From positions 690,521 through 754,520 of the forward strand of contig NC_069005.1 of the NCBI RefSeq assembly GCF_001194135.2: a DNA stretch of 64,000 nucleotides, in the 5' to 3' direction. Source of the stretch: Octopus bimaculoides. Taxonomy: Eukaryota. The notes beneath the pieces are model-generated. The model ran no database searches. It saw only the letters and a list, made by a program, of their open reading frames with translations, and was not told where the DNA came from. A program made the position numbers and the translations under genes. Of the stretch, positions 9,256 through 45,857 are shown in pieces; position 1 is the stretch's first letter, and each line of letters starts with the position of its first letter.

Positions 9256-9960
9256 TTAAAAAAAAAAAGCGAAACATGTTTAAAATTTGACTAAATTTGA
9301 AAACATTTTTCAAAAACAAATTTAAAAAAAAAAAAGCCAAACCCACACAGAAAGAAAAAAAAAAAACAAATTGTTATTTTTTTTGTTTTTAATGGTGAGG
9401 TGAAGTGAAGAATGAACCAAGTAGAACAGAAATCTGTTTCACTTTTTTGGTGGTGGGAGATTTCGGNNNNNNNNNNNNNNNNNNNNNNNNNNNNNNNNNN
9501 NNNNNNNNNNNNNNNNNNNNNNNNNNNNNNNNNNNNNNNNNNNNNNNNNNNNNNNNNNNNNNNNNNNNNNNNNNNNNNNNNNNNNNNNNNNNNNNNNNNN
9601 NNNNNNNNNNNNNNNNNNNNNNNNNNNNNNNNNNNNNNNNNNNNNNNNNNNNNNNNNNNNNNNNNNNNNNNNNNNNNNNNNNNNNNNNNNNNNNNNNNNN
9701 NNNNNNNNNNNNNNNNNNNNNNNNNNNNNNNNNNNNNNNNNNNNNNNNNNNNNNNNNNNNNNNNNNNNNNNNNNNNNNNNNNNNNNNNNNNNNNNNNNNN
9801 TCCACTGTTTTAACACATCATGTCCGTATGGAAACCTAAAGGAAAAAAGAGAGAGAACAAAAAACTTGATTGCATTATTCTATCATCTAACGAATAGAAA
9901 GATGTTGTTTTACGAATTTATTGTATGTTTCTGCAAATGTTTTCCCTCTTATATTCTTTT

Positions 9961-10174
9961 CTACTCTAGGCACAAGGCCCAAAATTTCTGGGGAGGGGGG
10001 GGAGGCAGTTGATTAGATTGACACCAGTACGCAACTGGTACTTAATTTATTGACTCCTGAAAGGATGGAAGGCAAAGTCAACCTCGGCAGAATTTGAACT
10101 CAGAACGTAAAGACAGATGAAATACCGGTAAGCATTTTCCCCGGCATGCTAACCATTCAGCCAGCTCGCTGCCT
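9961..10174 (-). mobile_element. tRNA-derived SINE family 1 (representative copy)
   Basis: Minus strand reads ggcagcgagctggctgaatggttagca (A box) ... ctgagttcaaatt (B box) ... ataaattaagtaccagttg body. Other approximate copies at 10600-10810(-), 27046-27231(+), 27465-27655(+), 34300-34510(-), 36570-36720(+), 37400-37610(-), and clusters in SETD6 introns. Confidence 0.85.
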
Positions 10175-11087
10175 TTCCCCGCCTGATATTAAAACGCTTC
10201 AGACAGAGTCCTGTAGCGTGAGAACAATCTGTCACATTGTGGAAAGGGGATGGTAAGAGATTCAAACAAAGGCTATTGGCACGCACACAGGTGACATCTT
10301 AAAAGTGGAATATACATGAAGTCAGCTTAATATTCAATTAAACACATCAACATTGACTGTAGCAAAGGTGTACTGGTCTAGTAGTTAAGCTGTTGTACTC
10401 ACACGGATAAGGTTGTGGTTTCAATTCTTGAACTGGGCAGAATGTTGTGTTCTTGAGCAAAACACTTCATTTCATGTTGCTCCAGAAATGAGTTTCAAAA
10501 ATAACTGGGAAGTTCACCCTGTGACAGACTAGCTTCCCGTTCAGTTGGGGACAGTTGTAATTACCATGGAAACAGGGTTAAATCACAGTCTTATGAAATG
10601 TAGGGGTTTCAAATTTTGGTTACAAGGCTAGCAATTTCGGTGGGGAGTGTTGATTATATATCCCCCACCCCACGCCCCAGTACTCGACTGGTACTTAATT
10701 TGTCGATCCTGAATGGATGAAAAGCAACTTTGGCAGAATCTGAACATAAAGATGGACAAAATGGTGCTAACCATTTGCCCCTCAGCATGCTATTGATTCT
10801 GCAAGCTCGGACCTACATATATTGCTCAAGGGTAGAGAATTGCTATGAAGTGAATTAGCAGAGGCCACGTGGAAGTGCAAGTTCAATGTCTTTCATGCAG
10901 ACGACTTTATTGATGATAAATCACTTTGTTACGTATGAAAAGAATTGCATTTGGTTAATGCTGGGAAAGCCAGGAACCAGGATATGATGGTTATGAATTT
11001 ATATGGAGAGAGGGGGGGGGGGAAGTAAAAGAAAAATGAGAGAAAGAATAAAAAGAGAACTTTTAGAAAATAAATCATTTTTTGCTT

Positions 11088-14000
11088 CTACTTACGTCTT
11101 CTCTTAAACATGACAACCATTACACAGAGTTTCGTATGGGGTGACAAATCAACAGGAATAGCTTTCACAGGGTAGAAAGCTTTACCTTTCATCGTCTGTG
11201 ATTTCGGTCTCATCAAACTGCAACAAGAAAACAAAATCTCTCTGTATTAAGCTTGGGGAACAAAAAGGTAAAATTGGAAACTGAAGATTAACCTCCAATA
11301 TTTCTGGCAGATTCTATGATTTATAAAAACACTACTGAAGACTTCATCTTCCAAACTCTACAGTTTGTTTCTTTTACTTAAAAGTAAGCTTAACAAGTCC
11401 TTTGTCAGGTTGTTCCTCCTTCCCCTAAAGACAGACTGGGTAAGGAAGCATTTGAAAGTTGACCGTTTTAGCCATGGTTTTTGTGGTCAACAGGTTTGCT
11501 TTGCAACATGGCTTCAGGTTCAGTCCCACGGGGAAGAACCTTCTAATATAAACCTAGGGCCAATCAAAGGTGTGTGTGTGGGTGTGTTTACATGTGCTTA
11601 TATGGAAGTGTGGCAGTTGATGTGGTTGTCAGTTTCTGCTGTCAACAAATTGATTGATCACTTGAAAGAGACACAAAGGGCCTTCGAACCCGTGTGAAAT
11701 AAGTGATCCCCTATTTGGAGAACAGGTTAACGGTTGGCATCCAATCATTCAGAAAACGATCAGGGTGGTGGTGGGGGAACAGAATTTTAAAAACCACAAA
11801 AATAATAATAAAACGTATGAACAGAAGAAATAAGGCAGCTGAAAGAGTAGCAATGATGTAAATGCCCCGAACATCTAACAATAATAATAACTTACTCAGT
11901 GAAATTCTGAATGGCAGCCACAGGGTTACACGAGATGTAGATCACTCGATGGATGAAATGACAGCGGCGAAGGGCGTATATCACTTTGCTTTCTGTAAAA
12001 CAAGCAGAAGAAATAACAAGTTATTGAATAGCTATAGTTCCTGGTGAAAATTTAGGACAATATTCCAGTGTGATGTACAGATCCAGCAAACTGGGATAAA
12101 ATGTGCATTACGTTGATAAACACCAGATTGTCAGTCAAATTAATGACTGCAATTAAGATTATGATTTTTCATACCAACCCATCTCAGACTATCCTCCCTC
12201 ATTCTACTAAAAGAATTTCTTTCAACCCTTCAGTATTCAGATTAAATTGAATTATAAATTCTTATCTTTTGTCGTTTTGAATTAATCAGGCATTATCTTG
12301 TTCCTTTGAGATTTTGATGATGTGATTGTATATTTTTTTTGGAATGACATTGCAAGGTAAGTGTGAGAGACCCAATCTGGTTGGTTTGAACATAAAACAG
12401 GTAGAATATTGTAGCTGGACTTGGCCAGTTTAAATGCTAAATGAAAATGAAAGTATTTCGAGAGAAATCTAGCAGCAAAGGAGCTGCCAATGATTTTAGA
12501 ATCTACATCAATACTCCCCGCCCCCTCCTCACACTCAGGTCTTCTTGAATATGTTGCATTGTATACATCCAGGAATGACAAACTGATTGCTGTGCAGTGT
12601 TGATGGAAATACTAAACTGTAAAGGAGAGATGAATAATAAGAGCAGACGAGGAGACGGCATCATGCAGTGGCAGATTGTACAGCAAAACAATAAGGTGTG
12701 AGAGGCTGCATCTGGCCAGCTTCAAACTAAAACAATATTTGGGCCGGAAGTGATTGGTTTAAGAAACCCACGACGAGATAATCCAACATATTTTTTTTCT
12801 TTAAGATGGTAGGGTGTGACTTGAAGAACATTTGGCTGTTATTTCTTGCAAGTCAAGCAACCAAATAGCAAAATTAATTAGAAAAAAAAAAAAAAAAAAA
12901 TGAATACATAAACTTACGCATTTCAGCACAAGGCGAGTCGAGTACAGCTACTGCACTTTGACCTTTCAGCCATCGGTCTAACTGGTTGGTCACTTCCTCA
13001 GCCTTTGCATGGTGGAAGATAACATTAGTCACATCTAGAGAAGAAGAGAATAACAGGTTGTAGTCATCATCAAAATATGGATTTGTAGAAACACCAGAGT
13101 ATCAGTTGAAACATTTGACAGTTTGCAGCCCTTCACAACAAACCCCACTTTCTCTTCCCATGTTCGTTACAGCCAAGTTAATTAATTATTGACAGAAAGG
13201 TTCCACCACTGTAATTAAAGACAGGAATGGAACACTGATGCCCGATTCATTGACTTGAAGAGTCCAATTCCAGCCGAAGGATAAAGCTGCCAACAAGGCA
13301 GGGATTCTATCCACAGAGATTTCTTCCTCATTTACCCGAAACCATGGAAACCAGAGATAAACACAGTCCAGTGTGGACGTCCCTGATAAGAACAGTGTTT
13401 GCATTGTGACATCAATACCATATAAGAAAGTTCATTACAGAGTTTAAAACCAAATAATAGCTTAACGAACCCTTGGTAGCAACAGAAGAGACAACCTGGC
13501 TCAGAGTGGATTTGAACTTTTGTATCATTACAAACTGTGAATTTATATTGAAGTACAGAGCAAATTGTGGAGCTGTTAATTGCAACACAGAGTGTGTTGG
13601 TAGAGAGACATTTGGCAATGGTCAACTCAAATTTGGGAGAATGTAGCTTGATGCTATTTAAGTGTGTAGCCTTCTTTCGCAACACAGAATAATGCCACAT
13701 AAATCCAATGATCCAGTATTACACCATTTAATACTCCATCCACCCAACACAGCTCTTCCTGTCTTAAAAATGACCTTAAGAACAAGAAAGTTATTTACTA
13801 AATTCTTTCTTATTCCTAAAATTTACTGAATTAAAAAAGAGTGAATCTCAACAGAAATACAGTAAGAAGAAGGGAAAGACCTGCTCAAGAGCAATCATTT
13901 CCCTTCATCAAAACCTAATCCACATCTTTCTATACAGAAATCAACAACAACCTAGGACAGTGAGTGGTACAAAGGGATAAAGTGGGGCCAGGTAAATTTG

Positions 14001-15509
14001 AGGGGGGTCAAAAAAGTTATACAGTATTACTCTGGCACATAAGGGCTTTCAATCACCACCACCACCGTCATCATCATCATATCTAATGTCCATTTTCCTT
14101 ATGTTTGCCTGGATCAAACAGTTTATTGAGACAGATTCTTTATAATGGATGTCCTTCCTGTTGCCAATGAAGTTCATATTTCTTCACAGCCAGACATGTT
14201 TTTTCAGAAGAATGGAAACGAATGATGTTCATTTGCAACAATCATGTGATGTCAGGACAAGGAAACCCTAACATACATAACACACACACACGACGGATAT
14301 CTTTCAGTTTCCGTCAACCCAATCCAATAACAAGGCTTTGGTCATCCCAGGGCTATATTAGAAGACACTTGCCCAAGAAGTTACACATTGAGATTGAACC
14401 CAAAAACCATCTGATTTGGGAAGCAAGCTTCTCACCCACACACCCACATCAACAGACAAAAAGAAAACTAAGAAAAGATTGTATTTACTGTTTAATTCCG
14501 CATTCTTCTTTGCTTCCTCGATGTTGGCAGCCCACATATCAACAGCGACAACACTTTTTACCCTCTGAAACAAAGAGGAGAGTGTGAGAAGAATTAGGGG
14601 TACAAAGGAGAAGAAGAGAAAATAGTAGATGGGGTGGGGGGTGAGTGAGAAAGAGAATGACTAAGGTAATCAGTACGAGGGGGCTGAAGGTGGTCAGTTG
14701 GCAAAGTGACCAGCATGATCGAGGAAATGCTTGGTGTGGCATTTCTGGGATCTTTTTACATTCTGAAGTCAAATTCTGCTGAGGTCTACTTTGCCTTTCA
14801 TCCTTTCAGGGGTCAACAACATAAAAGTACCAGTTAAATACTGGGGTCAATGTAATCAAACCTTTCACCCTAAAATTACTGGCCTTGTGCCAGAATGTGA
14901 AACAATATTAGAAAAAAATCCATGCAACCAGCAGTTTTTCTTCTGCCGTTTCAATCCAATGGAAGCAAGTCTTTTTTTTTTTTAATTAATTACACTTTAT
15001 CAAAATGATTTGTTAATACTGAGTTCAACAGAAGGTAGTGGGATGGTAGAAACCACAGAGCACAATGGCTGAATGTACTGCAGCTCTTAATTTCAGGCCC
15101 CAAAATTCTGAGATCAAATCTAGTCAAAATTGACTTTGGAATATATTCTATCAGCTTTAATTCTTTAGCATTCAGCCCAAATATTTCACCTGTTTTGTGC
15201 TCAAGCCAGTTAGATCTGGCCTCTCACACCTATTCTACAATGTCATTCTAAAAATATACAATCACATCATCACCGTCTCAAAGCTGAGATTAATTCAAAA
15301 CAATGTGATTAAATAAGCATTACATTGGACAGAATAAATTCAAATTCCAAAGGATTAAATGAACGAAAGAGAGTTGTGTAAAGTGGTTTGGTATTAATGT
15401 ATCAACCTGGGTAGGTTTCAGGTTAGATTTTTAACAATGGAAACAGAACCAAGTTCGGTTGTTAGTTTTATGTGCATGCATGTATATTTGTGTATATACA
15501 GTATATAAG

Positions 15510-15548
<39 letters not shown>

Positions 15549-15775
15549 GTGTGTACATGTGTATATATATATATACAAGTAGAGTAATGCCTTGATATAC
15601 AAGTTAATTTGTACCCAGAGACAGCTCGTATGAAAACACGTAAACACTTGTAAACCTGGGGTCTCGTAAAGTGGGTACTTGTAAAGTGAGGTATTATTGT
15701 ATATATATATATTTCTGGGTACAAATGTATAAAGTATATGTGGGTGTATGTATAATTGTGTGTGTGCAAGTGCAC

Positions 15776-15815
<40 letters not shown>

Positions 15816-18800
15816 NNNNNNNNNNNNNNNNNNNNNNNNNNNNNNNNNNNNNNNNNNNNNNNNNNNNNNNNNNNNNNNNNNNNNNNNNNNNNNNNNNNNN
15901 NNNNNNNNNNNNNNNNNNNNNNNNNNNNNNNNNNNNNNNNNNNNNNNNNNNNNNNNNNNNNNNNNNNNNNNNNNNNNNNNNNNNNNNNNNNNNNNNNNNN
16001 NNNNNNNNNNNNNNNNNNNNNNNNNNNNNNNNNNNNNNNNNNNNCCAACCAACAGCAATGACAACAAAGTGATAGCTAACCTTGGCAAGACTCAGTGCCA
16101 CAGTGCCAGTGCTGCAGCAGATATTAAAGACAATGTTATTTGGTTCTTCCAAGCAAAGATCACCAACCATCGTGTAGAGGAGGGCTGCAGCAGGGTTGTT
16201 GACTAGAAAAAGAAAAAGTCTGTCATCATCATAAGTTTAACACATGTTTAAATACTAGTCAAAGGTTTAATTAAAATATAATGAACGTTCTTTAAAATAT
16301 GTTGGTAAGGGTTAGAGGAGTCAATTAGCCATTGTATTGCTATTCATTTCAAACTTTTTGTCAGATGCTTTCAACCTAATGTTTTAAGGCTTCGACCCAG
16401 TATTCCTCTGATATAATACAACCCATTTGAACCCATGACCTTGTGATATCAGTGATCACATTTGTGTTCAATAGTTATGAATGAGATTGACAGAACAAGT
16501 ACTGGACTTAATAGCATGAACAGAGGGGTCAGCGACTTTTACTAAAACGCTTCATTGACCACAGTCCAATGAGCAAAACAAGGAAGAACTCTGGTTAAGA
16601 CTGGAATTGGTGGAGAAGTAAAAACTTGTGGAGAGACTTACATGAGAAGAAAGTGTCAGGATAAATGTGGAAGCTAAGTTCTAGTAACACTTCTGTGATA
16701 CACTGAAACAGACACAAAAGAAAGTTCATTAAAATGTGACAGAGGTAATTGTAATTAAGAGAGAAGTCCTCTTGCTAGAACACAAAACTTAAATAATTAA
16801 CCCATACATTAGTATATTGCTACTGAAATACACTAGTTTTGTTTTAATTGGTTTTGAAAATAATGAAAAATTTAATAAAATAACTGTCATTATTATTAAG
16901 CTGGTGTTTGGAACTTAAATTAACAGGAAATTTTGAAGAAAGGCATTTTGTAGTGTGTCGCGGGTGAAAAACATGGCAAAGTATGCTTTCACCATTTTGT
17001 TGCCATATTTTTAGTAAAAGTACATAATGTGTGATTCAATTAATTTTGAAATAAGTTTTTTCTTGAACATAAATTAAGAAGAAATGTTGATGGGAAGTTT
17101 TAAGTTGGATCATTTTAAACAATAAGTTGATGTGATAGAAGCAATCTCTGGCAGGTTGATACCAAAAGAGTTTAATAGGGATAAGGGTTTATATAACAGG
17201 GATTAATTAAAAGACAAACTAATTTTAAATTTGATTAATTGATGAATTTCATCAAAGCCAAATTTTCTTTTTCTTTGCACAGATCAATTTTTTAAATTGT
17301 ACAAAAGATGGATCATACTAATTATTTAAAAAATATATATATTTATGCTAAATAAATGTTTTTTCCTCGTTAATACTTTAATTCTTGTAGGTTAATTTTT
17401 TCTGTTTTCAATTTCTCAAGATTAGTAATTGTAAAGAAAATGATAAAAAAAATAATCATGGAAAGAAGCCAATGTCTGAGCTAAAAGAAAACAAGCAACC
17501 GATGTTACCTTCTTGCCCCATAAATGTTCGTTGACAGCATGTTGTCTACAGCTGCCAAGTCTAGTGAAAGGAAAGAAAAACCGTTTAGAGATGAGAAGCA
17601 GAAGAGCTAAAACGAAATGGCTTAAAACTGGAGGTCAGGGTTAGTCGTTTACTTCATTAAAGATGAGGACATACAAAAAACAAAAGGAAAGATTTTTTTA
17701 AAAAATGAAAAGACAAAGATATAGAAGGAAAAATAGAATAAAAGACTATAAAAGAAAAGAATTGCAGGGGAAAAAAAGGAGAATAGAAAGAAAACCCACC
17801 AAAGTCTTCCCCTAGATACAAAGTAAGAAGAGTAAGCAAAAAGTAAGCCCCACACATTGTACAGAAGCAAAAGAAAATAAGGTGTGTGTGTGTATGGGGG
17901 TAGCAGAAACAGCTGTTTTGTTAACCCCCAAAGCTGCAAGCAAGAATCATATTCAAAGAACTTCTGAAGTAATACATTATTTCATTGCTCCACCGAATTT
18001 AAAAAGAGGATGAATTGTGTCAAGAGTTTAGAGATGCCGGAGCAGAGAGCCCCGTACGGATTAAGCAATTGCCTTCCTGAAAAAAGTTCAACTGAATTGG
18101 TTGAATACTAGACCAAAAGCCTTTGTGGCTTTTGGCCATCAAAGTATTCCCAATCCGAATGTCAAGAACCTGTTTGTCTTTAAATTATGCATTTCTCAGT
18201 TCCCTTATAATTAAGTTCTCTAATTTGAGGAGAATGCCAACCATTGTTGGTAAGTAGTATACTTAACCCAATGTAAAACTATTTGTCTTTATTCACGATA
18301 AAATGCCTACAATCATATCAATTATGTGTGAGTGTGTGAATATACACACAAAAAATAATAATAAAGAATGGAATTAGCTAATTATGTTTATTGTTTCATT
18401 AACTTCAATTAAACCAATTTTGTGTCATGACATTGCCATGTCATCAATGCATGTCTGTACACATATCATAATTTAACGTCCACCTTCCATGCTAACATGG
18501 GTGGGACAAATATTCATGTACGTCTTTCTGTTTGTGCTCCCCACTGCTTGACAATCAGTATCAGTTTGTTTGTCGTAACTTAGCAGTTCAGCAAAGGAGA
18601 CTAATAAAATAGGTACCTGACTTACAAAACAAACTAAAAAACTGGAGTCAATTCATTCAATTAAAACCCTCCAACATGGCACCCCAACAACCAATAAAAG
18701 ACAAAAAAAAAACATATATACAGGACAGGCTTCTTTCACTTTCTGTCTACTATCCAATCCACTCACAAGGCTTTGGTCAGTCCGAAGCTATAGCAGAAGA

Positions 18801-21800
18801 CACTTGCCCTAGGTGCCATGCAGTGGGATTGAACCCTAGAACCATGTGGTTGTGAGACAAGCTTCTTGCTATACAGGTACGTCTGTGCCTATGTATATCT
18901 GTAAACACCCAAACACGCTCACCTGTTACTCAAGCATCTGAAGTAGAGGGATGTCACGCCACACTGGACTCCATCACCATCAGAGAAATACTCCGTCATT
19001 GCAGCTTTCTCAGCATCCACTTCATCCTGCAAATGAAAAAAAAACAAACGACAAAATCAACTCGAGTCAGCTTTGTCTGGTCTGATTCTTCCTTCTTTTA
19101 TGAGTTTTCAAGAATCTAAAGTTTGAGTGAAAGATTTTTTTTTTTTGTTGCAAATATAATATAAAAACTATTTCTTGACTTAATTCAGCAGAGAGAGGCA
19201 AAACATCTGGTTCAAAGATGAAGGGGGAAAACCTTAAGAACCTTTTGACCACAGCACTCCCAAGATGAGCCTTTAAGACAAATAGATTTATGAAGAAAGG
19301 AAAAGAAATGTTACAAGAAATGGATAACAAAAAGGAGAGGGAGAAAGAGAGAGAGAGAGAGAGATCATCATTTGATATTCAGCTTTCCTTGCTTGGATGG
19401 GTCAGACTGAATTTGTTGAGGCAGATTTTCTAGGACCAAAAGACCTTCCTGTCACCAACTTTGACCTGTTTCCAAGCAAGGTCAACGGCCAGACATGTTT
19501 AACACAGAAGATTGGAAATGAATGACCTCACTTGTATGATGGTGATGTTTATTTACAATCAGTATTGTCATGTCGAGACAAAGGGGTACACACATACAAG
19601 CATCTATACATGACAGGCTTCTTTCAGTTTCCGTCTACCAAATTAACTCACAAGGCTTTGGCTGGCCTAAGATGCCACACTACAGGACTGAACCTGAAAC
19701 CATGCGGCTGGAGAGCAAGTTTCTTAACCGTAAAGCCACACACAAAAGACCAGGCAGAGAAAACAAACGACAAAAATACTTACATCTGAGAGAAACTGAG
19801 CATAAAAAACAGGAATGATCATGATATCGTTTTGGCTGGATGTGCGAACAATCAGCTGCCTCCAGTGACCATCATGTGTCTGGTCATTGTAAACATCGTA
19901 CTGGCTCTGACGGACATACTGTTGGAACACTTTGGCGATGAGTTTCATGGAATCTGGGAGATTGTCACAGGCGTACGGTTCGCCAACAACACTAGAACCA
20001 TCACGGTAACTGCCGACCCGAAAGCCAACTATTCTTTCATTAGTGCCATTTGAGCTGCTAGCAATGGTGAATTCAGATTTATTGCGATAAGCATTCAAAA
20101 CAGGTGAAGGCCTTATCTTTTCGATTTCACAAAGAACTCCAGAATGATTCTTCATCTGTTCCTTGAGCCAATTTCTCCATTTTGGACATGTGCGGTGAAC
20201 TTCCCAACTAAATTTCACCATGGCATCTCTGACATCAGAAGCTTTACGCTAAAAAAAACATTACAAAAAAGAAAAACAAGTAAATAAACAAAAATAAAAG
20301 AAAAACCCTCATTAGCATCGTTTAATTATTCTTTCTTATTTTTGATTATGTTTAATATTTTATCATGCTTTTGTGAAGAATGAGACCTGTAGTCCCTTGC
20401 TGTAAGCCAGTTCATGTAACCTATTCAAAGGGGAATGTTGCAATAATCAGTGAAAAAGGTAAGAGGACTGATGTGATAAAAGACATTAATACTAACACTA
20501 CAAAAACATTTTGGAAAGAAACCAAAGATGTCATGGTTGGCAAGGCAAGAAAAAAAAAAAAAAACATAATATACAAAGCAAGTTCTACCTACCCTGAGCT
20601 GATCTTCATATGGTACATCACAAAATGGCAATAAGGCTCGTTTAACCCTAAGAAAAAAAGGATAAATTAAAAATAGAATTATTAATCCCAAAGTCAAATG
20701 TCCATTAGATAGATCAGTGGTTTCCAACCTGTGATCCAAGGACTCCTGGTGGTCTGCAAGCTAAATTCAAAATATCACACACACAAACTAGACGACACGT
20801 GACCTGTTGGGTCACTGACGGTTCAGGTTATAAAACAATGGAACTGATTTCAACATTGAAATGAAAGTTAATTTTATGAGGATTCACTTAAATAATTCAA
20901 TTTGTTTGCGTCAGGTTTACAAGTTCATGTTTAAGGTTTTATTGATTATTTACAGCATCTAATAGAAATAGAACTTCCAAGATAAACTTGAACCCTAGTA
21001 ACAGCATTTATTTATGTTATATGTGCACAAAAAGGAATTGTTATACAATATAAATATAAAATTAATGGAAACAATTTTCCCATTTCAGAAGGTTGTTTGG
21101 GATGTGCTAGAATCTCCCTTGAATCACACACCCTTTCCTCTGAAAATATTTACAATTTTTTCTTTTTTCTACCAAAACAGCTCCTCCCATGGTTTTTAAG
21201 TTAAATCCTTAGGTACTCTGAATCCACAGCATCTAAATGGTATTCGTTGAAAATTTTGTTAAAAAGTATCCATTCTTCTGAAAGTTATGAGGTTACAAAG
21301 TCTGTGGGGTACACATCTGTAGTTATGCCAACAAAACTATCCAGTGTTCACAGTACAGAGCAACAAGTCCAGGTTTTACTGCTTAAATTTGTGGAACCCC
21401 CCCCCCCGCCAAAAAACCCCACATATCTCAGGAATCTGTGGTCCGATTTACGCGAACCTTGTTTTATTCCATTTGCATTCATATTTCAGAGCATTTTCCC
21501 ATCATGCACTGGTTTGACTGTATTAAATGACAGGCAGGCAAGCAATGAGAAGAATTTTAGTAGTATATAGATATACATACAAGGATAAGGATATTAAAAG
21601 GGGTCTATGGAGAAACACATTTAAATAAAAGGGGTCGTTGCTAGTGAAACGGTTGGGAATCACTGAGATAGATAGATATATGATGGTGGTAGGATGGTTG
21701 TGGAGTAGATAAAGTACCTATGTCATAATTATTCTAGGTACTCTACCTTATATACTCAACAAGGAGACAGTTATAGGATGTATCTATAATTTCCAGGCCA

Positions 21801-24499
21801 AAATGTGGACATTATGAACAGTTTCTGCTGTTTTTTTTGCATTACATTTTGAACTCAGGAATCACTTCCATTTACATGACTCCCACCGCCTCTAAATCTT
21901 AAATTTCATCAGCTTAAAAGTAAACAAAAACAGTAAAAATAAAAACATTAAATCAGAAATGAATTGACTGAAATTTCCACTTTGAAATGGCGTCAGACAT
22001 GAACAGAGTTCAATAAAATTCATTTTCTCCAGAATAAGTGTCAAAGTTTAGAAAACCTCCAAATAACCACAATCACCTTTGCATTAACCTAATCCACTGG
22101 ACAATATTGTTATCTGCTGAATAGTAAATCTAAAAGTGGGACTTAGAATAGAACAGCTGATAAGAGTACCAAAGTAAGAGTAAGGTGGTGGTGGGGGTGG
22201 GAGTGTCGATAGAAATGTGGCCAACATGAAGTGAAAGAACTTAATTTACAAGAATTAAAAACAAAAAATGGTTTTCACTTACTTTTCACCAGCTGTGGTA
22301 ATATCATCTGGGATGTCTATAGATATTTTACTTTTCTTGGACTCTGACACATCCTGAGATGACCCTGCAGCAAAACACCAGGACATTCGTTATTTAATGA
22401 TGGCAGTGGTGGTAGGGTTAGCAGAGACAGTCATCATCAACTGACAGCTTCTGAATGGATTTAGTAGATGGAAGCTGAAAGAAACCTGTATATGTGTGTG
22501 TGTGTGTGTGTGTGTCTTTGTCCTCCACCACTGCTTGACAACTGGAGCTGGTGTGCTTATGCCTCCGTAACTTAGTGGTTCAGCAAAAGAAACTAATAGA
22601 ACAAGTACCAGGCTTAAGAAATATAAGTCCTGGGGTCAATTTGTTCGACTAAAACCCTTCAAGGCGGTTGCCCCAGTATGGCTGCAGTCAAATGACTGCA
22701 ACAAGTAAAACGAAAAGAAAAAAAAAAGAGTTGGAAATAATTAGTGACCTGACATTTCTGTGAACTAATTTGTATTCTTAATGCCTCATCTTTCAGATTT
22801 ATTTTGAGTTTTGAGTTGTGAAAATGGTGCTTTGTCGTGTCTTGAGAATTCCTTGTTATTTTATTTCATGAATTTTATAAACAACAACTTTGCACAGAAA
22901 CACAACAAACATCTTAAAATGGAAAAGACTTACAGAACTAAAAATAAGTATACATATCGTATGAGCTCGTGTCACGTAAAAAGCACCCAGTCCACTCTGT
23001 AAAGCGGTTAGTGTTAGGAAGGGCATCCGACCTTAGAAACCAAACCAAATCAGGTGGGAATCTAGTACAGCCCTCCAGTTTGCCAGCTCTGGTCAAACCA
23101 TCCACCCTATGCCAGCATGGGAAACGGATGATAAATGATGACGATGACGATGATGACATTACCTCTAAACACTCAATCAAATGTCACTGATTATCACTGA
23201 GACAATGTCAACTAGACTGAAATATATCGGGTTACAAGGGCGGTGGGGAAAGGGTTTTAACATCAATGAATAAAGAATGAGATATAAAATATTTTACCTG
23301 CAACATCTTTACGCTTAGCAGACAGGTTCTCAAAGCTTTGATCAGATATCTATGGAAGAAAAGAAAAGAAATAAATAAAATTGGAAATTTGTAGGGAGTA
23401 AACAATGTATGCTTATTTCATGAACCAGGAAAGGATGAAAAGCAAAGATGATTGCAATAGAACTTGAACTCACATTCTAGAGAAAGCAAAACAATTGTTT
23501 TAATAAATTAAAACGTTTAATTCATTATCCAACCCTTTCTACCAATGCTTATAAGACGTATCACTACAACTGGCAGAGCGTCTCCATCCCTCCCTCCCTC
23601 TGTAGGTCTATGTACTCCCCAAAGACAACGTATTGCAGTTATCTCCCTTGGTTCGTGTTAGTCATCTGGAAGATGGTACTGTTGGTGACATACTTCTGCC
23701 ACTGTTCATTAGTGTGTGGGAATGTAATTAACTGATAGCTCATATGATGGTAAAGTCCTCACCCAGTCAATTATTTTAGTTAAAGTCTGCTAGCAACTCA
23801 ATACCAGCCACGTTACTAACGAGCAAATGGGGACCACAAAAGCCCGTTTCCATTTCAGCCCTTACTTCTGACGCCACGGCACAACTATTTGTGGTTCATA
23901 AATGTTATTGGAAAGGCACACATTAAGAATCGTTCTGTACATGGAAATAGCAAACACTTCTTATTTGCACATCACACATCATTCACCATACGTGCAAGTG
24001 TATTATACAACATCCTAGAGAAGATAGGTGTTTCTCTTCTCCTGCAAAACACCTTATCCTGTCCTCCTTTCCTGGCACAAAGCTCCCTCCTGCAATACTG
24101 CACCCTCAGTCAGTAAAAGGGTCTTATCTTGCAAGTCACTTGGTGACCCTACTAATGCTGGTACTATGAAAAACACCCAGTCCACACTCTGTAAAGTGGT
24201 TGGCATTAGGAAGAGCATCCAGCTGGAGAGACCTTGGCAAAGCAGACACTGGGGACTTAACACAGTCTTCAGGCTTATCAGGTCTTGTCGAACCATCCAA
24301 TCCATGTCTGCATGGAAAATGGACATTTGATGATGATGATGATGTGTAATAGGGAAAGACAATTCACACGACACTTCTCTCAACAGGATTCCAACATTTT
24401 ATTAGTCAAAATTGACAGAAATATCTAAAAACCACACAAAAGCATAACAGGTCTACTTACATTGCTGTTGTTGTTTCTGTTGGTTTCGGCCTCCATCAT
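11088..24499 (-). CDS. TRMT2A-like tandem paralog ('copy B'), 13 coding exons, 483 aa, no RRM, catalytic motifs degenerate (putative pseudo-enzyme)
   Basis: GT-AG exons in phase with no internal stop: 24499-24461 (MMEAETNRNNNSN), 23349-23298, 22364-22283, 20647-20593, 20248-19784, 19026-18923, 17560-17509, 16702-16642, 16202-16081, 14564-14489, 13034-12918, 11992-11896, 11217-11088 (TAG). Eight exons equal their copy-A homologs in length (55, 104, 52, 61, 122, 76, 117, 97 nt). Retains YRNKSEF, WRQLIVRTS and YISCNP. AATAAA on the minus strand at 10906-10911. The N-terminal exon assignment is less certain than the rest. Confidence 0.9.
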
Positions 24500-24599
24500 T
24501 GAAGTCTGAAATTAAATTAAAGGAAAATATGAAATTTGAAAGACAAAACCTCAAACAGGTATCTACAGTAGCACCCTTTATGCCTCTTCATTGTTCTGC

Positions 24600-25490
24600 A
24601 TCCATGAACAGTAACAATGTTGGGAACATCCTTAAATGGGGACATGGTAAGTTGGTGTCCTTCCACCCCCAAGTACAACATATATCAAAGCAAACAGGTT
24701 TCTACCTGTACCCTCTGGTTATGAACAACAACACAGCTAAACCTTTCGCAGGGGTTGCAACCACCACAAAAGCTCTCAACTTCTGGTGATCTCTCATTGA
24801 AGCTTCACAGACCATTGCCAAAAGGAATTTGTGATTTGTCCACCTTCCTACTTACTAAGACTTTGGTTTTTTTTTTGGTTAACTCTAAGGCCCTTTGATT
24901 CTAATCCTTGCTTCCACACCTGAAACTTCTTCTCTAGTTCTTATAGTGATTCAACTATAAGAGCAAGGTCATCAGCATAGAGGAGTTCCCAGGGGCAACC
25001 TGTCTTGGATTCCTGTTATTGCTTGGAGGACTATGATGAANNNNNNNNNNNNNNNNNNNNNNNNNNNNNNNNNCTATGATGAACAAGAGGGGGCTGAGGA
25101 CTGATCCTTGGTGAACCCCTAAATGTACCTCAAATTCTTCGCTATACTTGTTGCCAACCCTCACCTTACTGACAGCATCCCTGTACATGGCTTGTACAGC
25201 TCTCACCAACCATTCATATATCCCTAGTTTCTGCATTGACCACCAGATAAGGGATTGTCAGCAAAACCCAAGTACAGAGGTTTATCTTTGGAGAGATATT
25301 TCTCCTGCAGCAGTCGGACCAGAAATATAGCATCAGTGGTGCTTCTCCCTAGCATAAACCCAAACCACTTCTCATCTAAACTAATTCTCTCCCTAATTAG
25401 TTGGGCTATGACCGTCTCCGTAATTGGGTTTGATATAACTGGGCCCTCCACACTTCTCTATAGCCTTGTTTTTACAGTAGAAATCTTTAT
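24600..25490 (-). mobile_element. Degraded non-LTR retrotransposon (RTE-like LINE) reverse-transcriptase fragment
   Basis: Broken frames give FGFMLGRSTTDAIFLVRLLQEKY, LIWWSMQKLGIYEWLVRAVQAMY, GVHQGSVLSPLLFII and ELLYADDLAL (YADD at 24968-24979), with stops and frameshifts. Confidence 0.88.
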
Positions 25491-31783: not shown

Positions 31784-34700
31784 TTAAGATTGCATTGCAA
31801 CTTCACAGTCACTGCCGTCTGGTTTACACACTACCTCTGTTTCACAGACTTGCTTTGGCTCGCATACTTTCTCTGGTTCATTAACCTCCTCTGGTTTGCA
31901 AACTTCCACTGGTTCACAGACTTGCTTTGGTTCAGGAACTGCCTCCGATTCACAGACTTTCTGTGGCTCACAGACTTTCTCTGGTTCACAGACTTTCTCT
32001 GGTTCCTGAACTGCCTCTGGTTCACAGACTTTCTCTGGTTCCTGAACTGCNNNNNNNNNNGAACTGCCTCTGGTTCACAGACTTTCTCTGGTTCCTGAAC
32101 TGCCTCTGGTTCACAGACTTTCTCTGGTTCCTGTCTTCTCTCAAACATCACAACGAGTTCACAGTGCTTGGTATGTGGGAAAAGGTCGACTGGAATGGCT
32201 TTCACAGCAAAAAACGGCTCTCCTTTATTCCTCCGTGACTTGGGCCTCATTAAACTGCAAAAAGAGGAGGAGATTTTTAACAAAATAAAAGAACTTTTAG
32301 GTCTGAGGTGAAAATAAAAAAGTCCAGTTGTAAATTAAGATATAGTTCAGAACTGACAAACATAACAGCAAAGGTGAAAAACGGAAGATTGTCTCACAAG
32401 GTGACTTCTATACTTTGTACACACACACACACAAAGGCCACGGTGAGATATCTTTGATTGTGGGTCTGCTTAATTATAAATATGTAGAAAATGAGCAACT
32501 CAGTTGAGTGGTTAAGAGGTTTGCTTAACAGTCACAGGGTCATGAGTTCAATCCCACTGTCTGGTATCTTGTGGTAAAAGTATCTTTTACAGTCTTGAGT
32601 GAACCCAAGTATTGTGAGTAAGAAATTGGGAAGGTGGAAACTGAGTGGAAACTGTGTGAATTTCAAAGTGGACAAGGCTGGCTTTCTTCAGGGCACTCAT
32701 AGACGGCATTTATCACTATGAAGATGGAATTTGGACAATGAAGGAACTCCTAGATCACATTGATGGTACATATGCTGGGATTCTAATAAGGGGTCAAAAC
32801 ATGGCACAATCACAAGACCATAATGGAATCCATGAACCAATTCCACCCATTCCTATTATTGTTGTTCAATGCAGAATAGCCTTTGCTGGTCATTGGTATT
32901 GTGCTGAATAGCAGACCATATTGTGTGAGATTTTGGAGACTTTTACCCCTTAATAAAGGATGAAGACCCCTCAATTACATTGATGTTATTTGGTAGAGAT
33001 ACACAACATGAAATTGAGGAGCTACCATAATTAATAAGGGACAGAGATACTTGGTGTGGTGTGGGGAAAATGGATCTCAGTTGAGGAGGCTTTACCCACA
33101 TCAAAACAATAACTTACTCGGTGAAATTCTGAATGGCAGCCACAGGGTTACACGAGATGTAGATCACTCGATGGATGAAATGACAGCGGCGAAGGGCGTA
33201 CATTACTTTGGGTTCTGTAAAAACAAAAGTTGATAATGTCACACGGTTGAGAAGGAAAGACAGATTTGTGTTTTTGAATTGTTGTTTATGCTAAAGATAA
33301 ATACTAAATTGCAACATGGAAGCAACTACAAACCATCATTTCTAAGATACACATAAAGGCCTCAAAAAACCGGGATAACATCAATTGATGATTGAATCAG
33401 TAGTTCACAGGTACTTTATTTTTCAAACATCCAGAAGAATAAAAGTTTTATGCTCAAACTGGTTAGATCTGGCCTCTCCCACCGACCCACCAATGTCATT
33501 GTAAAAATAAACAATCAAATCATCAAAATCTTGATGATACAGGATGATGCATTACATTTGAGAGAGGAATTCAAATATTAAAGGGTCAAACTGGAATTAC
33601 TTACGCAGTCCCGGTCGAGGAGGATCAACAATGGCAACGGCCCTCTGACCCCTTGACCAGCTCCTCAGTTTCTCGGCAGCTTCTTCAGCTCTTGAGCAGT
33701 GGAACTCAATGTTTTTAATATCTGGAAGACAAGAATAGGTCAAATTTAATCCAATTTCATAACAGATTTGTGATAAACCCAAACAAACAAAATATTATTT
33801 ACACCAGCCTAAGTTGGGATTAAGAAAAATCTTGCTGCATCCTGACAATGAGATGCTTTTTGAGAGCTGAGCCCAAGATGTGATCACCACCATCATCATC
33901 ATCGTTTAATGTCCGTTTTCCATGATGGCATTGGCAGGACAGTTTGAGAGCAACTAGAAGCTCAGAACACTGTTCCAAACTCTGCTGCCAACTTTGGCAC
34001 GGTTTCTACGGCTGGTTACCCTTCATAACACTGACGACTTTACAGAGTGTTTCGGGTGGCACCAGCAGTGGTGAGGTCACCAAGTAACTTACAAGACAAG
34101 ATCCCCACAACTGGGGTGGGGGTGGGGAGTTAGTATTGAGGGACCGAAAAGTGCCTTATATTAGAAGAGAGACATGGCTTCCTCAGAAGGAGAGAAAGAA
34201 GGTGAAGACATGATAGGGGGAGAGCAAGGACCGTACACCCAAGTTACAGGGTGGTTCATGTAGTGCTCTTGTTTTTGATATAACAATAATGCTTTCAAAC
34301 TTTGGAACAAGGCCAGCAAGTTCGGTGTGATGGGGGGAAAGTAGAAGTCAATTCCATTGACCCCAGTTCTCAACAGTCACTTATTTTATTGACCCCAAAT
34401 GGATGAAAGGTAAAGTCAACTTCAGCAGAATTTGAACTCACAACGTAAGGACAGACGAAATGCTACTAATTATTTTGCCCAGCATGCTAACGATTCTGCT
34501 AGCTTGCTACCTTAATAAATAATATGATCATTGATTAATTCGCAGAGAAAAATCTTACCATTTAGTTTTGCATTCTTCTTAGCATCTTCAATGGCAGCAG
34601 GACAAACTTCCACACCCAAAACCCTTTGCACATGCTGAAACATTCAATAGAATAGAATTACATATGTGAAGACATGAAAGACAAGGCTCTTTTTCAATAG

Positions 34701-37700
34701 AATAGAATTACATATGTGAAGACATGAAAGACAATTCATTGTCCCCCATCCAAAGTTCATTTTCCATGCTGCTCAGTCATTTCACATCCACGGTTTCTAT
34801 GCTTGGCAACACTCAGAAACTACATAATTTGCTTCCCATCTAAGCACAAAAAAATAAAGAAAATCAGAAAAATGGAAAGCTAGTTCCGTACCTTGGCTAG
34901 AGTAAGACCGATGGTACCTGTACCACAACAGATATCAAGAACGACACTGTCTTTTTCAAGTTGACACCAATCAGCAACAAGAGAATAAAGTAAGGCCGTG
35001 GCTGGGTTGTTGACTGCAAAATGAGAAACATTCAAAATATCAAGAAATTCCACTCAAAAAATATCAGACATGATTCTTCAGTGATTAGCGAGAAAGTTAA
35101 CGGTGCCAATGTCAAAAAGTTAATGGTAGTTGGTTTCCTAAAAAACAGTTTGTTTATGACAGGTAAATGCTTCCTGGATAAAGAAAAGTAAGAACTTTAA
35201 CCCTTGTGATAAACAACTCGCCCAAGACTGCTCTTGGTTCTATGATATGAACTTGTTTTTAAAGTGAACTAAATTAAAATCTTCCATCAAAATTTGATAT
35301 CAATTTATCTCCCAGACAAAGTTATTTTATTACACTCTTCATTAATTAAAAAATTAATTGAAACAAAGGCAGTGTATTTCAGCAGAAACAAGGTAATGGA
35401 ACAGGATAATGGGGGTAATTAAAGAGATAATTAAGGTAATGGAACAGGATAAAGAAGTCAAAACACACAAATGAAGACTAACTTTGCAGATAATTTTCTT
35501 CATGGAGGTATAAGGAAAACACAACATAGTTTTAATAAACATACTTTTAGCCTCAAGAAAAAAGTAGGTACGTTTATTTTTTTTTTAATCTGTGGCTAGA
35601 AAAATGAGACTTGCCTGACTAGTTTTAGCAATTTTAATGTCCCATCAGAGTTTGGTTACTCATTTTCCTGACTACAGAGAGAAAACGAAAGCTTACAAAG
35701 GATTCACTGGATGGTCAAGAAGTTTGTCTAAGATTCTGATCTTTACTGGTAACCCCAGTGTCCAATCTCCAACCAGATTTTACATCAAGTTAAAAGACAA
35801 AAACCCCTGTGACATCTTTAACGATAACAGCATTTTAACCTCACTGGCACAGAGAGAAATTATGATGGTGCCACAAGTGCCAATGTTGACAAGTGCTGAA
35901 TAACAATGGTATTAACTGAACTAATTTTTCTAGATCAACTCACAGGTTAAGTACAACTACATATACTTTCAACAAACAACTGAGATGATGATGTTGGTGG
36001 TGATGATGATGATGAACATATTTTTATATAAATTAATGACTTACTTTGAAAAAATGCATCAGGAGAAATTTGAAAACTCAGACCCAATAAATTTTCAGTA
36101 ATCCACTGAAATATAAAAAATAACCAAACAAAATAATGACCATATAAATGATTTAAAGGTAAATGGAAGAATATTGCAAAATAAGAATAATTAGTAATCT
36201 ACACTAAAGGGGAGTAGACTGGTAAAATCGGTAGAGTGACAGAAAAAAAAACCTTGTGGTAGTTCTTCTGGGTCTTTATATTCTCAGTTCAAATCCAGCT
36301 GAGGTTGATAAAATAATGTACCAGTTATGTCCTGGTACATTATGTCATCATCATCATTGTTTTCATGTCTTTTTCTAGGCTTGCAGAGGTCAAATGGAAT
36401 TTGTTGGAAGAAGATTTTCCTTGGCTGGATGCCCTTCCTGTCACCAACCTTAGTTTCCAAGTGAGTAAATATCTCATGGAAGATTGGAAACAAACAGCAC
36501 TGCTTATATGAAGGTGACATTCATTTACAAATATCACACAAAGTCAAGATGAAGAGGCAAAACACACGGCAGCAAGCAGGTAGTGGCATTCTTGTGGAAA
36601 TTTACATTCTGAGTTCAAATCCTGCCTCAGTCAACTCTGTCTTTCATCCCTTCATGGTTGATAAACTTTCAGTCAAGTCCTGGGATCGATGTAATAGACT
36701 TATTCCTTGCCACCTTCATAACTGTTAGCCTTGACTTCTGCAACGGACCAGTGTCCGCTTGGTGAGAAACATTGTGGTCCCCGGTCATTCATACATCATG
36801 GAAACCAGGCAACCAACTATATGAGTCCTAAGTCTCAAGAAGAGCACAAACAACAGGACTCTTTCAGTTCCTATCTATGAAATCCATTCACAAGGCTTCT
36901 GGTCAGCCAGAGGCTAGAGAGGAAGATCCTTGCCTAAGGTGCCATGCAATGGGACTGAACCATGAACCATGTGATTGGGAAGCCGTGCCTGTGCCTATAT
37001 TCGAAAATCATCATCACCACCTTGATAACATACCTGAATCCAAGGATGAATAACAAGGGAAAAACCAGAAGAGGAAAGGGGGGGGGGGACAATAAATTGT
37101 TTTATGTTTTTAGGAGAGAAATTCAGTGTTGAGTGAATTGAACTGGTTTCAAATGGGAAATGATGAGATTATGTTTGCCTGAGGGGGTCAAACCCTAGCC
37201 AACTCAGTGATAAGGATCCTTGTACCAACGATGGAGATGAGACAGTTGTTCAATCCGTTAGAAATAACAGCCAAATTACACCATACTATCATAAAAACAA
37301 AAGGATACGTTGGACAATGTAGTCCTAATATTGAAAAAGGACAGTGGCCATGGTTGTACTGTCTTCGATCACAAGACTGCTCAGTCTTTCTGATTTAGAC
37401 CCAAGGCTAGCAATTTCGAGGAAAGGGGGTCAGTAGCTGATACCATTGATCCCTAGTATTTGACTGGTACTTTAATTTATCGACCCTCAAAGGATGAAAA
37501 GTGAAGTTAACCACAGCAGATTTTGAACTCAGAACATAAAGCACAAGAACAAACCCTGAAAGACATTTTCTCCAATGCCGTCATGATTCTACCAACCACT
37601 GCCCTAACCTAGGGTCAATTTACACAATAACAACAACAACAACAACAACAACAATTACAGAAAAACAAAATCTACTTCCTCTGACCTCATTGCCCATCAA

Positions 37701-39266: not shown

Positions 39267-39307
<41 letters not shown>

Positions 39308-45300: not shown

Positions 45301-45857
45301 GATACTTTGTTATGGAAACATGCCTGGTCTATGGAAGGGGAAAATGGCTACATTGATGATGATGATGATGAAAATGGTGGTGGTGGCGGCAGTGGTGACT
45401 GATTGCATACAAAGCAGTTGCATGTTTTAATTAAGACCAGCAAAAATCTTAGTAGAAGATGAAGGAAAACCTGACTTACAGAGAAACCAAACCTTGGTAA
45501 ATTTTGTATTTCTATCTTGAAAATCTCAGAAGTGAACTCATCTCTTTTGATGTAGGAATATTCATCCTGAATCACAGAAATCTTCTTAGAATTTACATCT
45601 TGATCACATTTGGAACTTTCTGTAGGTTTTGACTCTTCATTTGTCATTGTCACATCAGGAGATTTTGTACATTCTGCAAGCGTGGACTCTTGATTGTCTG
45701 CTAATTTTTCTTCACATGCTACCAATTCGTTACCATTTTTGATATGTTCCACACCAGTTTCAGTCGTTAAAGAACTGTCGTGGTTATTTTCCACTGAACT
45801 TCCAACACTACCAACGGCATCGTTACTGGCTTCTTTTTCTGCACTAACTTCCATCAT
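31784..45857 (-). CDS. TRMT2A: tRNA (uracil-5-)-methyltransferase homolog A, canonical copy ('copy A'), 19 coding exons, about 765 aa (last exon crosses a 10-N gap)
   Basis: GT-AG exons in consistent phase: 45857-45480, 44039-43951, 43347-43272, 43149-43101, 42665-42578, 41765-41711, 41312-41218, 40735-40687, 40138-40075, 39426-39320, 39014-38868, 37941-37838, 37737-37686, 36105-36045, 35013-34892, 34634-34559, 33721-33605, 33214-33118, 32254-31784. RRM region: [44 protein letters not shown]. Methyltransferase motifs: [66 protein letters not shown]. All match TRMT2A/TrmA-family motifs from memory. AATAAA on the minus strand at 31615-31620. Confidence 0.96.
31810..32133 (-). repeat. Coding minisatellite in the last exon of TRMT2A: 18-nt unit (36-nt higher-order), peptide xEPExV ([18 protein letters not shown])
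   Basis: Repeated gaaccagagaaagtctgt / gaaccagaggcagttcag on the minus strand, about 17 visible hexapeptide units. A 10-N gap at 32051-32060 is flanked by the same gaactgc, consistent with a collapsed array. Confidence 0.9.
34643..34734. repeat. Perfect 42-nt direct repeat (period 50) just upstream of the TRMT2A exon 16 acceptor
   Basis: ttcaatagaatagaattacatatgtgaagacatgaaagacaa at 34643-34684 and 34693-34734. Confidence 0.9.
42780..42910 (-). mobile_element. Second MITE-like dispersed repeat (agatctggcctctcacacctaccctacaatgtcattc core)
   Basis: The same core recurs at about 12290-12445(-), 15160-15330(+), 33440-33560(+) and 59770-59870(-). Confidence 0.6.

Follow-up and report, generated by a model that had tools for sequence, protein, structure and literature searches.

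Loss of four adjacent introns as a block from a diverged TRMT2A paralogue in octopods

The window, by which we mean the whole 64,000-nt stretch of Octopus bimaculoides DNA analysed here (NC_069005.1, positions 690,521 to 754,520), carries two TRMT2A genes in tandem, arranged head-to-tail and both on the minus strand. Copy A (32061..45857, minus strand) is a full-length, intact TRMT2A gene with 19 coding exons. It starts at an ATG at position 45857, is free of stop codons and has GT-AG dinucleotides at all boundaries; its 3ʹ end meets a 10-N gap within a tandem repeat. The encoded protein matches the Pfam domains RRM_1 (25.4 bits) and tRNA_U5-meth_tr (68.9 bits), and its methyltransferase domain is intact, with all catalytic motifs present. 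Annotated orthologues of copy A exist in O. sinensis (P0127, 87%) and Argonauta (P0128, 78%). Our homologue searches retrieved no annotated protein for O. bimaculoides copy A, and a literature search found no paper connecting TRMT2A and octopus.

Copy B (9810..24505, minus strand) is a TRMT2A-derived paralogue that lacks the RRM. The splice map of its annotated protein, P0002 (XP_014773283.1), is exact on the window. Counted from the MMEAETN start (ATG at position 24499), the gene has 14 coding exons; an additional exon in the annotated isoform X1 (28932-28810) is doubtful. Copy B adjoins copy A head-to-tail, 8-11 kb downstream, in both Octopus and Argonauta. The A-then-B order is kept in Argonauta with an intergenic distance of ~11 kb, and copy A was accordingly not found within the 10 kb upstream of Argonauta copy B.

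A single exon of copy B (19784..20248, minus strand; 465 nt, 155 codons, phase 0 at both ends, flanked by ...ttttag and gtaagt) encodes residues 120-274 of P0002 with an exact match. The same stretch of copy A is divided among five exons, all on the minus strand and with AG/GT flanks: exon 7 (41218..41312, 95 nt), exon 8 (40687..40735, 49 nt), exon 9 (40075..40138, 64 nt), exon 10 (39320..39426, 107 nt) and exon 11 (38868..39014, 147 nt). Together these make up 95+49+64+107+147 = 462 nt, a single open frame of 154 codons. The five exons and the fused exon align from end to end with 55% amino-acid and 60% nucleotide identity, far above chance (for comparison, the copy-B protein matches its own exon in tblastn with E = 7.7e-103), and the outer junctions of the block are in phase 0 in both copies. 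The earlier note had given the coordinates of these exons in both copies exactly to the base, and the alignment bears out its claim that five copy-A exons of 462 nt are equivalent to one copy-B exon of 465 nt with common outer junctions. The four introns missing from copy B span 39015..41217 (minus strand) in copy A, at positions and in phases common to outgroups. They are, from junction 1 to junction 4, a phase 2 intron of 482 nt (40736-41217), a phase 0 intron of 548 nt (40139-40686), a phase 1 intron of 648 nt (39427-40074) and a phase 0 intron of 305 nt (39015-39319), all on the minus strand.

Were these introns lost from copy B or gained by copy A? The earlier note had favoured loss and had marked that direction as inferred; intron mapping in outgroups now bears it out. 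Junctions 1-3 (phases 2, 0 and 1) share their alignment column and phase across copy A, Argonauta A, the bivalve Tegillarca, the brachiopod Lingula and the sea cucumber Apostichopus, and junction 4 (phase 0) does so across copy A, Argonauta A, Tegillarca, Lingula, the vent snail Gigantopelta and the cockroach Blattella. Exon lengths tell the same story. The 49/64/107/147-nt series of copy A recurs in Tegillarca, and Lingula has the lengths of copy A apart from one exon of 61 rather than 64 nt. Argonauta A matches copy A in all five lengths. Among the outgroups, the 95-nt length is found in Lingula, the 49-nt length in Tegillarca, Apostichopus and Lingula, the 64-nt length in Tegillarca and Apostichopus, the 107-nt length in Tegillarca and Lingula, and the 147-nt length in Tegillarca, Gigantopelta and Lingula. 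Since outgroup genes carry the four introns at the same position and phase, we regard the introns as ancestral and the direction, loss in copy B, as settled. Judged by the same comparisons, copy A has preserved the exon-intron structure ancestral to lophotrochozoans.

The fused exon is not confined to O. bimaculoides. It is present in O. sinensis (L015:16490-16954, 465 nt), in Argonauta hians (L005:14747-15229, 483 nt) and in Logan contigs assembled from octopus reads (L001-L004). These occurrences exclude misassembly, which the earlier note had named as a finding that would undo its reading, and they place the intron loss, as dated by these orthologues, before the Octopus-Argonauta split. No intermediate with part of the introns was seen in the four B-bearing genomes (O. 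bimaculoides, O. sinensis, Argonauta and the Logan octopus). Intron gain in copy A, or an error of assembly or annotation behind the fused exon, has a negligible probability: introns identical in position and phase occur in two molluscs (a bivalve and a gastropod) as well as in a brachiopod, an echinoderm and an insect, the fused exon occurs in four independent data sets (three besides O. bimaculoides), and no support for either idea remains.

The rest of copy B has kept its introns. Downstream of the fused exon, eight introns match copy A in position and phase, with exon lengths of 104/52/61/122/76/117/97 in both copies; upstream, three introns match in position and phase, with exon lengths of 55 and 82 versus 88 nt. 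The earlier note had described all other introns as identical. That description is correct for the introns common to both copies, but copy B has one additional 3ʹ terminal intron that is absent from copy A. Because 11 other introns are still at ancestral positions, we interpret copy B, on its gene structure, as a DNA-level duplicate and not a retrocopy. A neighbour-joining tree hints that the A/B duplication is older than the octopod stem (81% bootstrap), although the long branch of copy B makes that dating unsafe. A search of a representative library with P0002 returned no B-like cluster above 42% identity beyond the A and B clusters.

How were four introns removed while 11 were kept? We propose that copy B was formed by a DNA-level duplication that retained 11 introns at ancestral positions. 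Later, before the Octopus-Argonauta split, it lost four adjacent internal introns in one block. The loss would most likely have occurred through a single homologous-recombination or gene-conversion event, in the course of double-strand-break repair, in which a stretch of the gene was replaced from a spliced-transcript template. The template would most probably have been a partial cDNA produced by a retroelement reverse transcriptase, and the conversion tract would have run from within the 95-nt exon to within the 147-nt exon. Templated repair or recombination from a spliced transcript in one event is, in our judgement, the likely explanation for the block and the one that accounts for it best; we infer both the single event and the RNA-derived template.

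Adjacency and precision carry this argument. The standard prediction of the reverse-transcriptase model is the precise loss of adjacent introns (PMC3652778). Here, four consecutive introns are gone and the 11 others are kept, from which we infer that the four went simultaneously; under independent loss, the chance that four introns out of the 15 comparable ones fall in one run is P = 12/1365 = 0.009. Lost junctions 1, 2 and 4 are free of gaps in the alignment. At or near junction 3 there is one extra codon, seen as a single 3-nt gap at alignment nt 206-209, with the former junction after nt 208. The location given for this codon in the earlier note is thus supported by the alignment. The length difference could mean that removal was inexact there; however, the codon is not necessarily a trace of the intron loss, since the length of this loop varies across taxa: Lingula is one codon shorter, and Argonauta B is six codons longer again than Octopus B. 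The earlier note had also proposed recombination with reverse-transcribed spliced RNA, and this remains the probable and best-supported route, given the adjacency, the precision and the 11 introns kept. Retroelement reverse transcriptase is present in the O. bimaculoides genome (Pfam RVT_1), which we count in favour of the cDNA route.

The block differs from some cases of mRNA-mediated intron loss in its position. What it has in common with them is the precise deletion of adjacent introns, a preserved frame, the retention of all remaining introns and a genome rich in retroelement reverse transcriptase. In contrast to the 3ʹ bias expected of poly(A)-primed reverse transcription, the block is internal and eight introns 3ʹ of it are retained, so one has to suppose either that the conversion tract was internal or that a further recombination took place later. 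Only one version of the model predicts a 3ʹ bias, and internal losses occur commonly in other systems (PMC2395259). Loss of internal blocks is itself documented (PMC3652778, PMC2395259), and the octopus block resembles the “internal intron loss” that PMC2395259 describes in Cryptococcus and further eukaryotes. A further difference is that the octopus loss affects a diverged paralogue of a tandem pair rather than a single-copy gene.

Could the same structure have arisen in another way? Repair of a double-strand break directly from spliced mRNA, with no free cDNA intermediate, is unlikely in our assessment, although it predicts the same precise, adjacent and internal loss and fits the internal position of the block, as it needs no poly(A) priming. 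Sequence alone cannot tell it from the cDNA route. A tract of ~460 nt that crosses four junctions would be long compared with known cases of RNA-templated repair. Transcript-templated double-strand-break repair is reported to have been demonstrated in human cells (PMC12065846). We consider it very unlikely that four separate, exact genomic deletions, caused by NHEJ, microhomology-mediated repair or replication slippage, came to be neighbours by coincidence. Precise loss of single introns through double-strand-break repair is documented in animals (PMC3698931), and a deletion that was not quite exact could have left the extra codon near junction 3. Nonetheless, four independent exact events would be required, their single run is improbable even if loss is granted, and none of the four B-bearing genomes examined shows an intermediate. 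Microhomology points the same way: with copy A as a diverged proxy for the ancestral copy B, it amounts to 0, 0, 1 and 2 nt at the lost junctions and is not above that at the 14 retained introns (0-3 nt), whereas a genomic-deletion model would lead one to expect raised values.

Less likely again is that copy B is a retrocopy of a semi-processed copy-A pre-mRNA, or a chimera of such a retrocopy with genomic DNA, in which the four introns were never present. The fused block would then need no second event, and the ends of copy B do differ from those of copy A (RRM exons missing, a new 3ʹ exon), as is often the case for truncated or chimeric retrocopies. Like processed and semi-processed retrogenes, copy B has a stretch structured like spliced mRNA. 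Unlike them, it misses only four of 15 comparable introns, still has ancestral introns upstream and downstream of the block and lies in tandem with its parent; the features by which processed retrogenes are recognised, absence of most introns and a dispersed location, are not those of copy B, which is in tandem in two genera. Eleven introns remain at ancestral positions and phases, and the head-to-tail position 8-11 kb downstream of copy A in Octopus and Argonauta is the arrangement that marks unequal crossing-over. It would be far less parsimonious to suppose that a pre-mRNA still carrying 11 of its 15 introns was inserted beside its parent.

The event is very old, and synonymous sites are saturated between copies A and B; hence, the boundary of the conversion tract, the identity of the template and any intermediate allele are not recoverable. 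Identity between the copies is 0.55 in the fused region and 0.60 in the downstream exons; it is not raised in the fused region and gives no pointer to the donor transcript. Late conversion by a cDNA derived from copy A finds no support, as the fused-region identity of 0.55 is below that between copy A and cephalopod transcripts (0.64) and not above the downstream value. Nor is there a signal of A-to-I RNA editing hard-wired via cDNA: fixed A>G versus G>A differences stand at 9:8 in the fused exon and 11:24 elsewhere (Fisher P = 0.22).

The earlier note had pointed to local remnants of LINE reverse transcriptase. A degraded LINE-type remnant is indeed present in the 5ʹ intron of copy B (24851..25385, minus strand), with YADD and QGSVLSP motifs, a Pfam RVT_1 match of 43.7 bits (cut-off 29.6 bits) and an N gap (25041-25073) that splits it. 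As support for the mechanism, the remnant fails. The Argonauta loci L005 and L011 do not contain it, while the loss predates the Octopus-Argonauta split; on this comparison the remnant is young, postdates the event and is without evidential weight for the intron loss.

What has become of the protein encoded by copy B? Copy A resembles the TRMT2A/Trm2/TrmA m5U54 tRNA methyltransferases in having an RRM and a complete tRNA_U5-meth_tr domain. Copy B, in contrast, lacks the RRM, the general-base Glu, the Gln of FFQ and several residues of the SAM site and motif IV. It retains a fold-level match to tRNA methyltransferases and the nucleophilic Cys in SCNP, and YISCNP is conserved in the copy-B proteins of O. 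bimaculoides, O. sinensis and Argonauta. The general-base Glu corresponds to E358 of TrmA and E581 of hTRMT2A (residue roles from PMC10484741). This column is Glu in 99% of 116 TRMT2A proteins and aligns with the E/Q difference between the RlmCD structures 5xj1 and 5zq1; copy A has HCE, whereas all three copy-B orthologues have LCV (Glu to Val). Columns conserved at 99-100% in the family are also changed in the SAM-binding motif I (D to N, G to S/N), in motif IV (DPPRxG; DPPRPG to DSPCAE) and at the uridine contact (FFQ to FFS, Gln to Ser). Pfam RRM_1 matches copy A and not copy B, and no relics of the RRM exons were found in the window at 20-32 kb or upstream of Argonauta B (best E = 0.85). 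Strong purifying selection has nevertheless acted on copy B from a time before the Octopus and Argonauta lineages parted.

With the RRM, the SAM site and the general base gone and the RNA-attacking cysteine kept, we judge the chances to be about even that copy B is an octopod, possibly coleoid, pseudoenzyme rather than a redundant TRMT2A. Such a protein might serve as a non-catalytic binder or chaperone of tRNA or other RNA, or as a regulator of copy A.

The block loss in copy B is a new instance of a well-known process and leaves knowledge of the mechanism unchanged. Its value is as a clean, fully polarised block loss in a slowly evolving, intron-rich lophotrochozoan lineage, in which the neighbouring paralogue preserves the “before” state and exon lengths in outgroups as distant as brachiopods are the same or almost the same. 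It can be used as a teaching or benchmark example, and as a data point for internal, non-3ʹ-biased RNA-templated loss. The putative pseudoenzyme status of copy B is more interesting than the intron loss itself. Every named database record retrieved for copy B is labelled “TRMT2A”, although the protein is missing residues required for catalysis, and studies of m5U and tRNA modification in cephalopods should use copy A, not copy B. If copy B is a pseudoenzyme, the intron-loss block would be one mark of its remodelling after duplication.

In this Octopus bimaculoides window, two TRMT2A-type genes form a head-to-tail pair, both on the minus strand. Copy A, which we assembled exon by exon, runs from 45857 to ~32061 in 19 coding exons, with GT-AG boundaries throughout and no stops; among its Pfam domains are an N-terminal RRM (RRM_1, 25.4 bits) and tRNA_U5-meth_tr, which is complete (68.9 bits). 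Its terminal exon enters a tandem repeat interrupted by a 10-N assembly gap (region 32051-32254, minus strand); hence, the C-terminus, stop codon and full length are not fixed by the assembly. The tail of Argonauta copy A is a comparable acidic repeat with cysteine, and its N-terminus is a long N/S-rich extension. O. sinensis and Argonauta each have an annotated copy-A orthologue (P0127 and P0128, respectively); for O. bimaculoides copy A, no annotated record was retrieved by homologue searches of imperfect recall, one of which missed the annotated copy-B protein (P0002, XP_014773283.1). The exact splice map from that protein places copy B at 24505 to 9810 on the minus strand, plus a doubtful annotated exon at 28932-28810. 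This exon, the first of isoform X1 (MCMCLCSHYHRRHHH...), is low-complexity in appearance; the start of isoform X2, like that of the models for O. sinensis and Argonauta, is MMEAETN (ATG at 24499). The gene that follows copy B in O. sinensis is WD40/coronin-like (DUF1899; L015:31606-38703) and lies on the opposite strand.

A single copy-B exon, 20248-19784, is the counterpart of five copy-A exons. The latter (95, 49, 64, 107 and 147 nt; 462 nt in sum) are each bounded by AG/GT and join into an open frame of 154 codons, collinear with the fused exon (465 nt, 155 codons) at 55% amino-acid and 60% nucleotide identity. Both copies have phase-0 outer junctions, and the alignment has only one gap, of 3 nt at positions 206-209, former junction 3 lying after nt 208. 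The earlier note was therefore right about the five-to-one equivalence, the shared outer junctions, and the three internal junctions free of indels with an extra codon at or near the third. Its statement that downstream introns are identically placed also holds for the shared ones: the eight introns 3ʹ of the block match in position and phase, with seven intervening exons of 104, 52, 61, 122, 76, 117 and 97 nt in each copy. Three introns 5ʹ of the block, which it had not mentioned, likewise match. Outside the block, structural differences are confined to the gene ends. The RRM exons are missing from copy B, where a search for their relics was negative, and at the 3ʹ end there is one additional intron (11095-9836, minus strand, phase 1), followed by a terminal exon (9835-9810) with 23 nt of coding sequence. 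This exon encodes the C-terminus ...R(F/Y)(H/R)(T/S)DMMC; intron and exon are kept in O. sinensis and Argonauta copy B and missing from copy A and all outgroups. The RRM region of copy A is cut by a phase-2 intron (exons 43951-44039 and 43272-43347, minus strand; 89 and 76 nt) that is common to Argonauta copy A and Lingula (92 and 76 nt). The Tegillarca model has one 165-nt exon in place of these two, pointing to a separate loss of this intron in the bivalve.

Mapping introns in outgroup TRMT2A genes, a check proposed in the earlier note, gave a clear direction. Each annotated protein was placed on its own genomic locus by an exact splice mapper, and junctions were compared on a protein alignment marked with intron positions and phases. 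Exons are 95, 49, 64, 107 and 147 nt in Argonauta hians copy A, 95, 49, 61, 107 and 147 nt in the brachiopod Lingula anatina, and exactly 49, 64, 107 and 147 nt in the bivalve Tegillarca granosa. All four junctions coincide in the two A copies, Tegillarca and Lingula. The sea cucumber Apostichopus also has junctions 1-3 (phases 2, 0 and 1), and the snail Gigantopelta and the cockroach Blattella also have junction 4 (phase 0). Hence, all four introns, which are carried together by Tegillarca and Lingula, date back at least to lophotrochozoans, and outside that group a deuterostome has three of them and an insect has one. It is virtually certain that the ancestral structure is that of copy A and that, as the earlier note had supposed, the introns were lost from copy B rather than gained in copy A.

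The fused exon is present in copy B of O. sinensis (L015:16490-16954, 465 nt; exon series 39, 52, 82, 55, 465, 104, 52, 61, 122, 76, 117, 97, 122, 23) and Argonauta hians (L005:14747-15229, 483 nt), and in four independent Logan octopus genomic contigs that are ~87% identical to the window over the exon and its flanks. The loss is therefore older than the Octopus-Argonauta split, across which synonymous sites of copy B are saturated (pS 0.72-0.97). In Argonauta, copy A lies ~11 kb upstream of copy B on the same strand; thus, the tandem pair is conserved. In a neighbour-joining tree, A, B and two transcript-derived proteins, P0129 and P0130 (64-65% identity to copy A), form one clade with 100% bootstrap, and copy B falls outside A plus P0129/P0130 with 81% bootstrap. 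This position could reflect a duplication predating octopods, a placement made unsafe by the long branch of copy B. The Argonauta fused exon has a GC3 of 0.89; the remaining exons of that gene average 0.62, and the value in O. bimaculoides copy B is 0.42; introns nearby (L005 flanks 13751-14500 and 15751-16250) are GC-rich too (0.59-0.66). GC-biased gene conversion or a recombination hot spot may be responsible.

How were the four introns lost? Copy B retains 11 introns at ancestral positions and lies in tandem with copy A in two genera, which makes it a DNA-level duplicate and not a retrocopy. An origin as a semi-processed retrocopy, lacking the block from the outset, would be much less parsimonious. 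The block loss is separate from the duplication, whether as one event or a series. If four of 15 comparable introns had been lost independently, the chance of one unbroken run would be 12/1365 = 0.009. Removal was indel-free at three of the four junctions. The extra codon at the remaining junction might be taken for the scar of a deletion, but it need not be one, since this surface loop varies in length by taxon (Lingula, -1 codon; Argonauta B, +6 codons relative to Octopus B). With copy A as proxy, donor/acceptor microhomology of the lost introns is 0, 0, 1 and 2 nt, not above that of retained introns. The reverse-transcriptase model classically predicts that adjacent introns are lost precisely and together (PMC3652778), and internal-block losses lacking 3ʹ bias are well documented, the explanations offered being conversion tracts within the gene or recombination at a later stage (PMC2395259). 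Together, the run probability, junction precision, low microhomology and this precedent favour a single transcript-templated event; four separate deletions would be much less parsimonious.

We propose that one event of homologous repair or gene conversion copied the sequence of a spliced transcript into copy B, most probably by way of a partial cDNA; the conversion tract would have ended in the 95-nt exon on one side and the 147-nt exon on the other. Direct RNA-templated repair would leave an indistinguishable result. Judged from sequence comparison, it is quite likely that RNA- or cDNA-templated conversion best explains the block, with loss in B and before the Octopus-Argonauta split. The cDNA-recombination signature described in the earlier note is thus supported by adjacency and precision, while the templating step itself is one that we infer. 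As to which transcript was the donor, copies A and B are no more alike over the fused region than elsewhere, and a search for A>G changes indicative of an edited mRNA template found no excess.

The same note had cited local LINE remnants. A degraded LINE-type reverse transcriptase is indeed present in the 5ʹ intron of copy B (~25385-24851, minus strand; N gap 25041-25073), with QGSVLSP and YADD motifs, frameshifts and stops, and a Pfam RVT_1 score of 43.7 bits against a cut-off of 29.6 bits. No such remnant was found at the Argonauta A and B loci. Reverse transcriptase acts in trans. Because the loss predates the split, the enzyme works in trans and the Argonauta loci lack the remnant, this fragment carries no information on that event. 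Short dispersed repeats of one family (~8916-8993, 19666-19738, 29506-29574, 44928-45000, 46004-46089 and 55264-55330; one frame reads ...CHTVGLNPKPCGW...) occur in introns of both copies, one of them directly 3ʹ of the fused exon, as also in the Logan octopus contigs.

Copy B is named TRMT2A in every named record retrieved (O. bimaculoides XP_014773283/4, O. sinensis XP_029650873, O. vulgaris CAI9741051/2, Argonauta GAB1607961). Among 124 alignment columns at least 95% conserved across 116 metazoan TRMT2A proteins, 41 are altered in copy B (16 by the missing RRM, 25 by substitution) and seven in copy A; each of the three B orthologues examined departs from the family consensus at the substituted columns. 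SAM-binding motif I has Asp to Asn and Gly to Ser/Asn, motif IV reads DSPCAE for DPPRPG, and FFQ has become FFS, with loss of the glutamine in contact with the target uridine. HCE has become LCV, so that the general-base glutamate is gone; in the alignment, its column is the one at which RlmCD structures 5xj1 and 5zq1 differ as E/Q, and by motif it corresponds to hTRMT2A E581/TrmA E358 (PMC10484741). The SCNP cysteine, counterpart of the nucleophile C538/C324 (PMC10484741), is kept. Between Octopus and Argonauta, copy B has pN of 0.06-0.11 with saturated pS and 84-90% amino-acid identity, and is under strong purifying selection. These features suggest that copy B is likely a pseudoenzyme, conserved but no longer catalytic. 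With the block loss, a well-known kind of event gains one more example; the probable pseudoenzyme is the more interesting lead.
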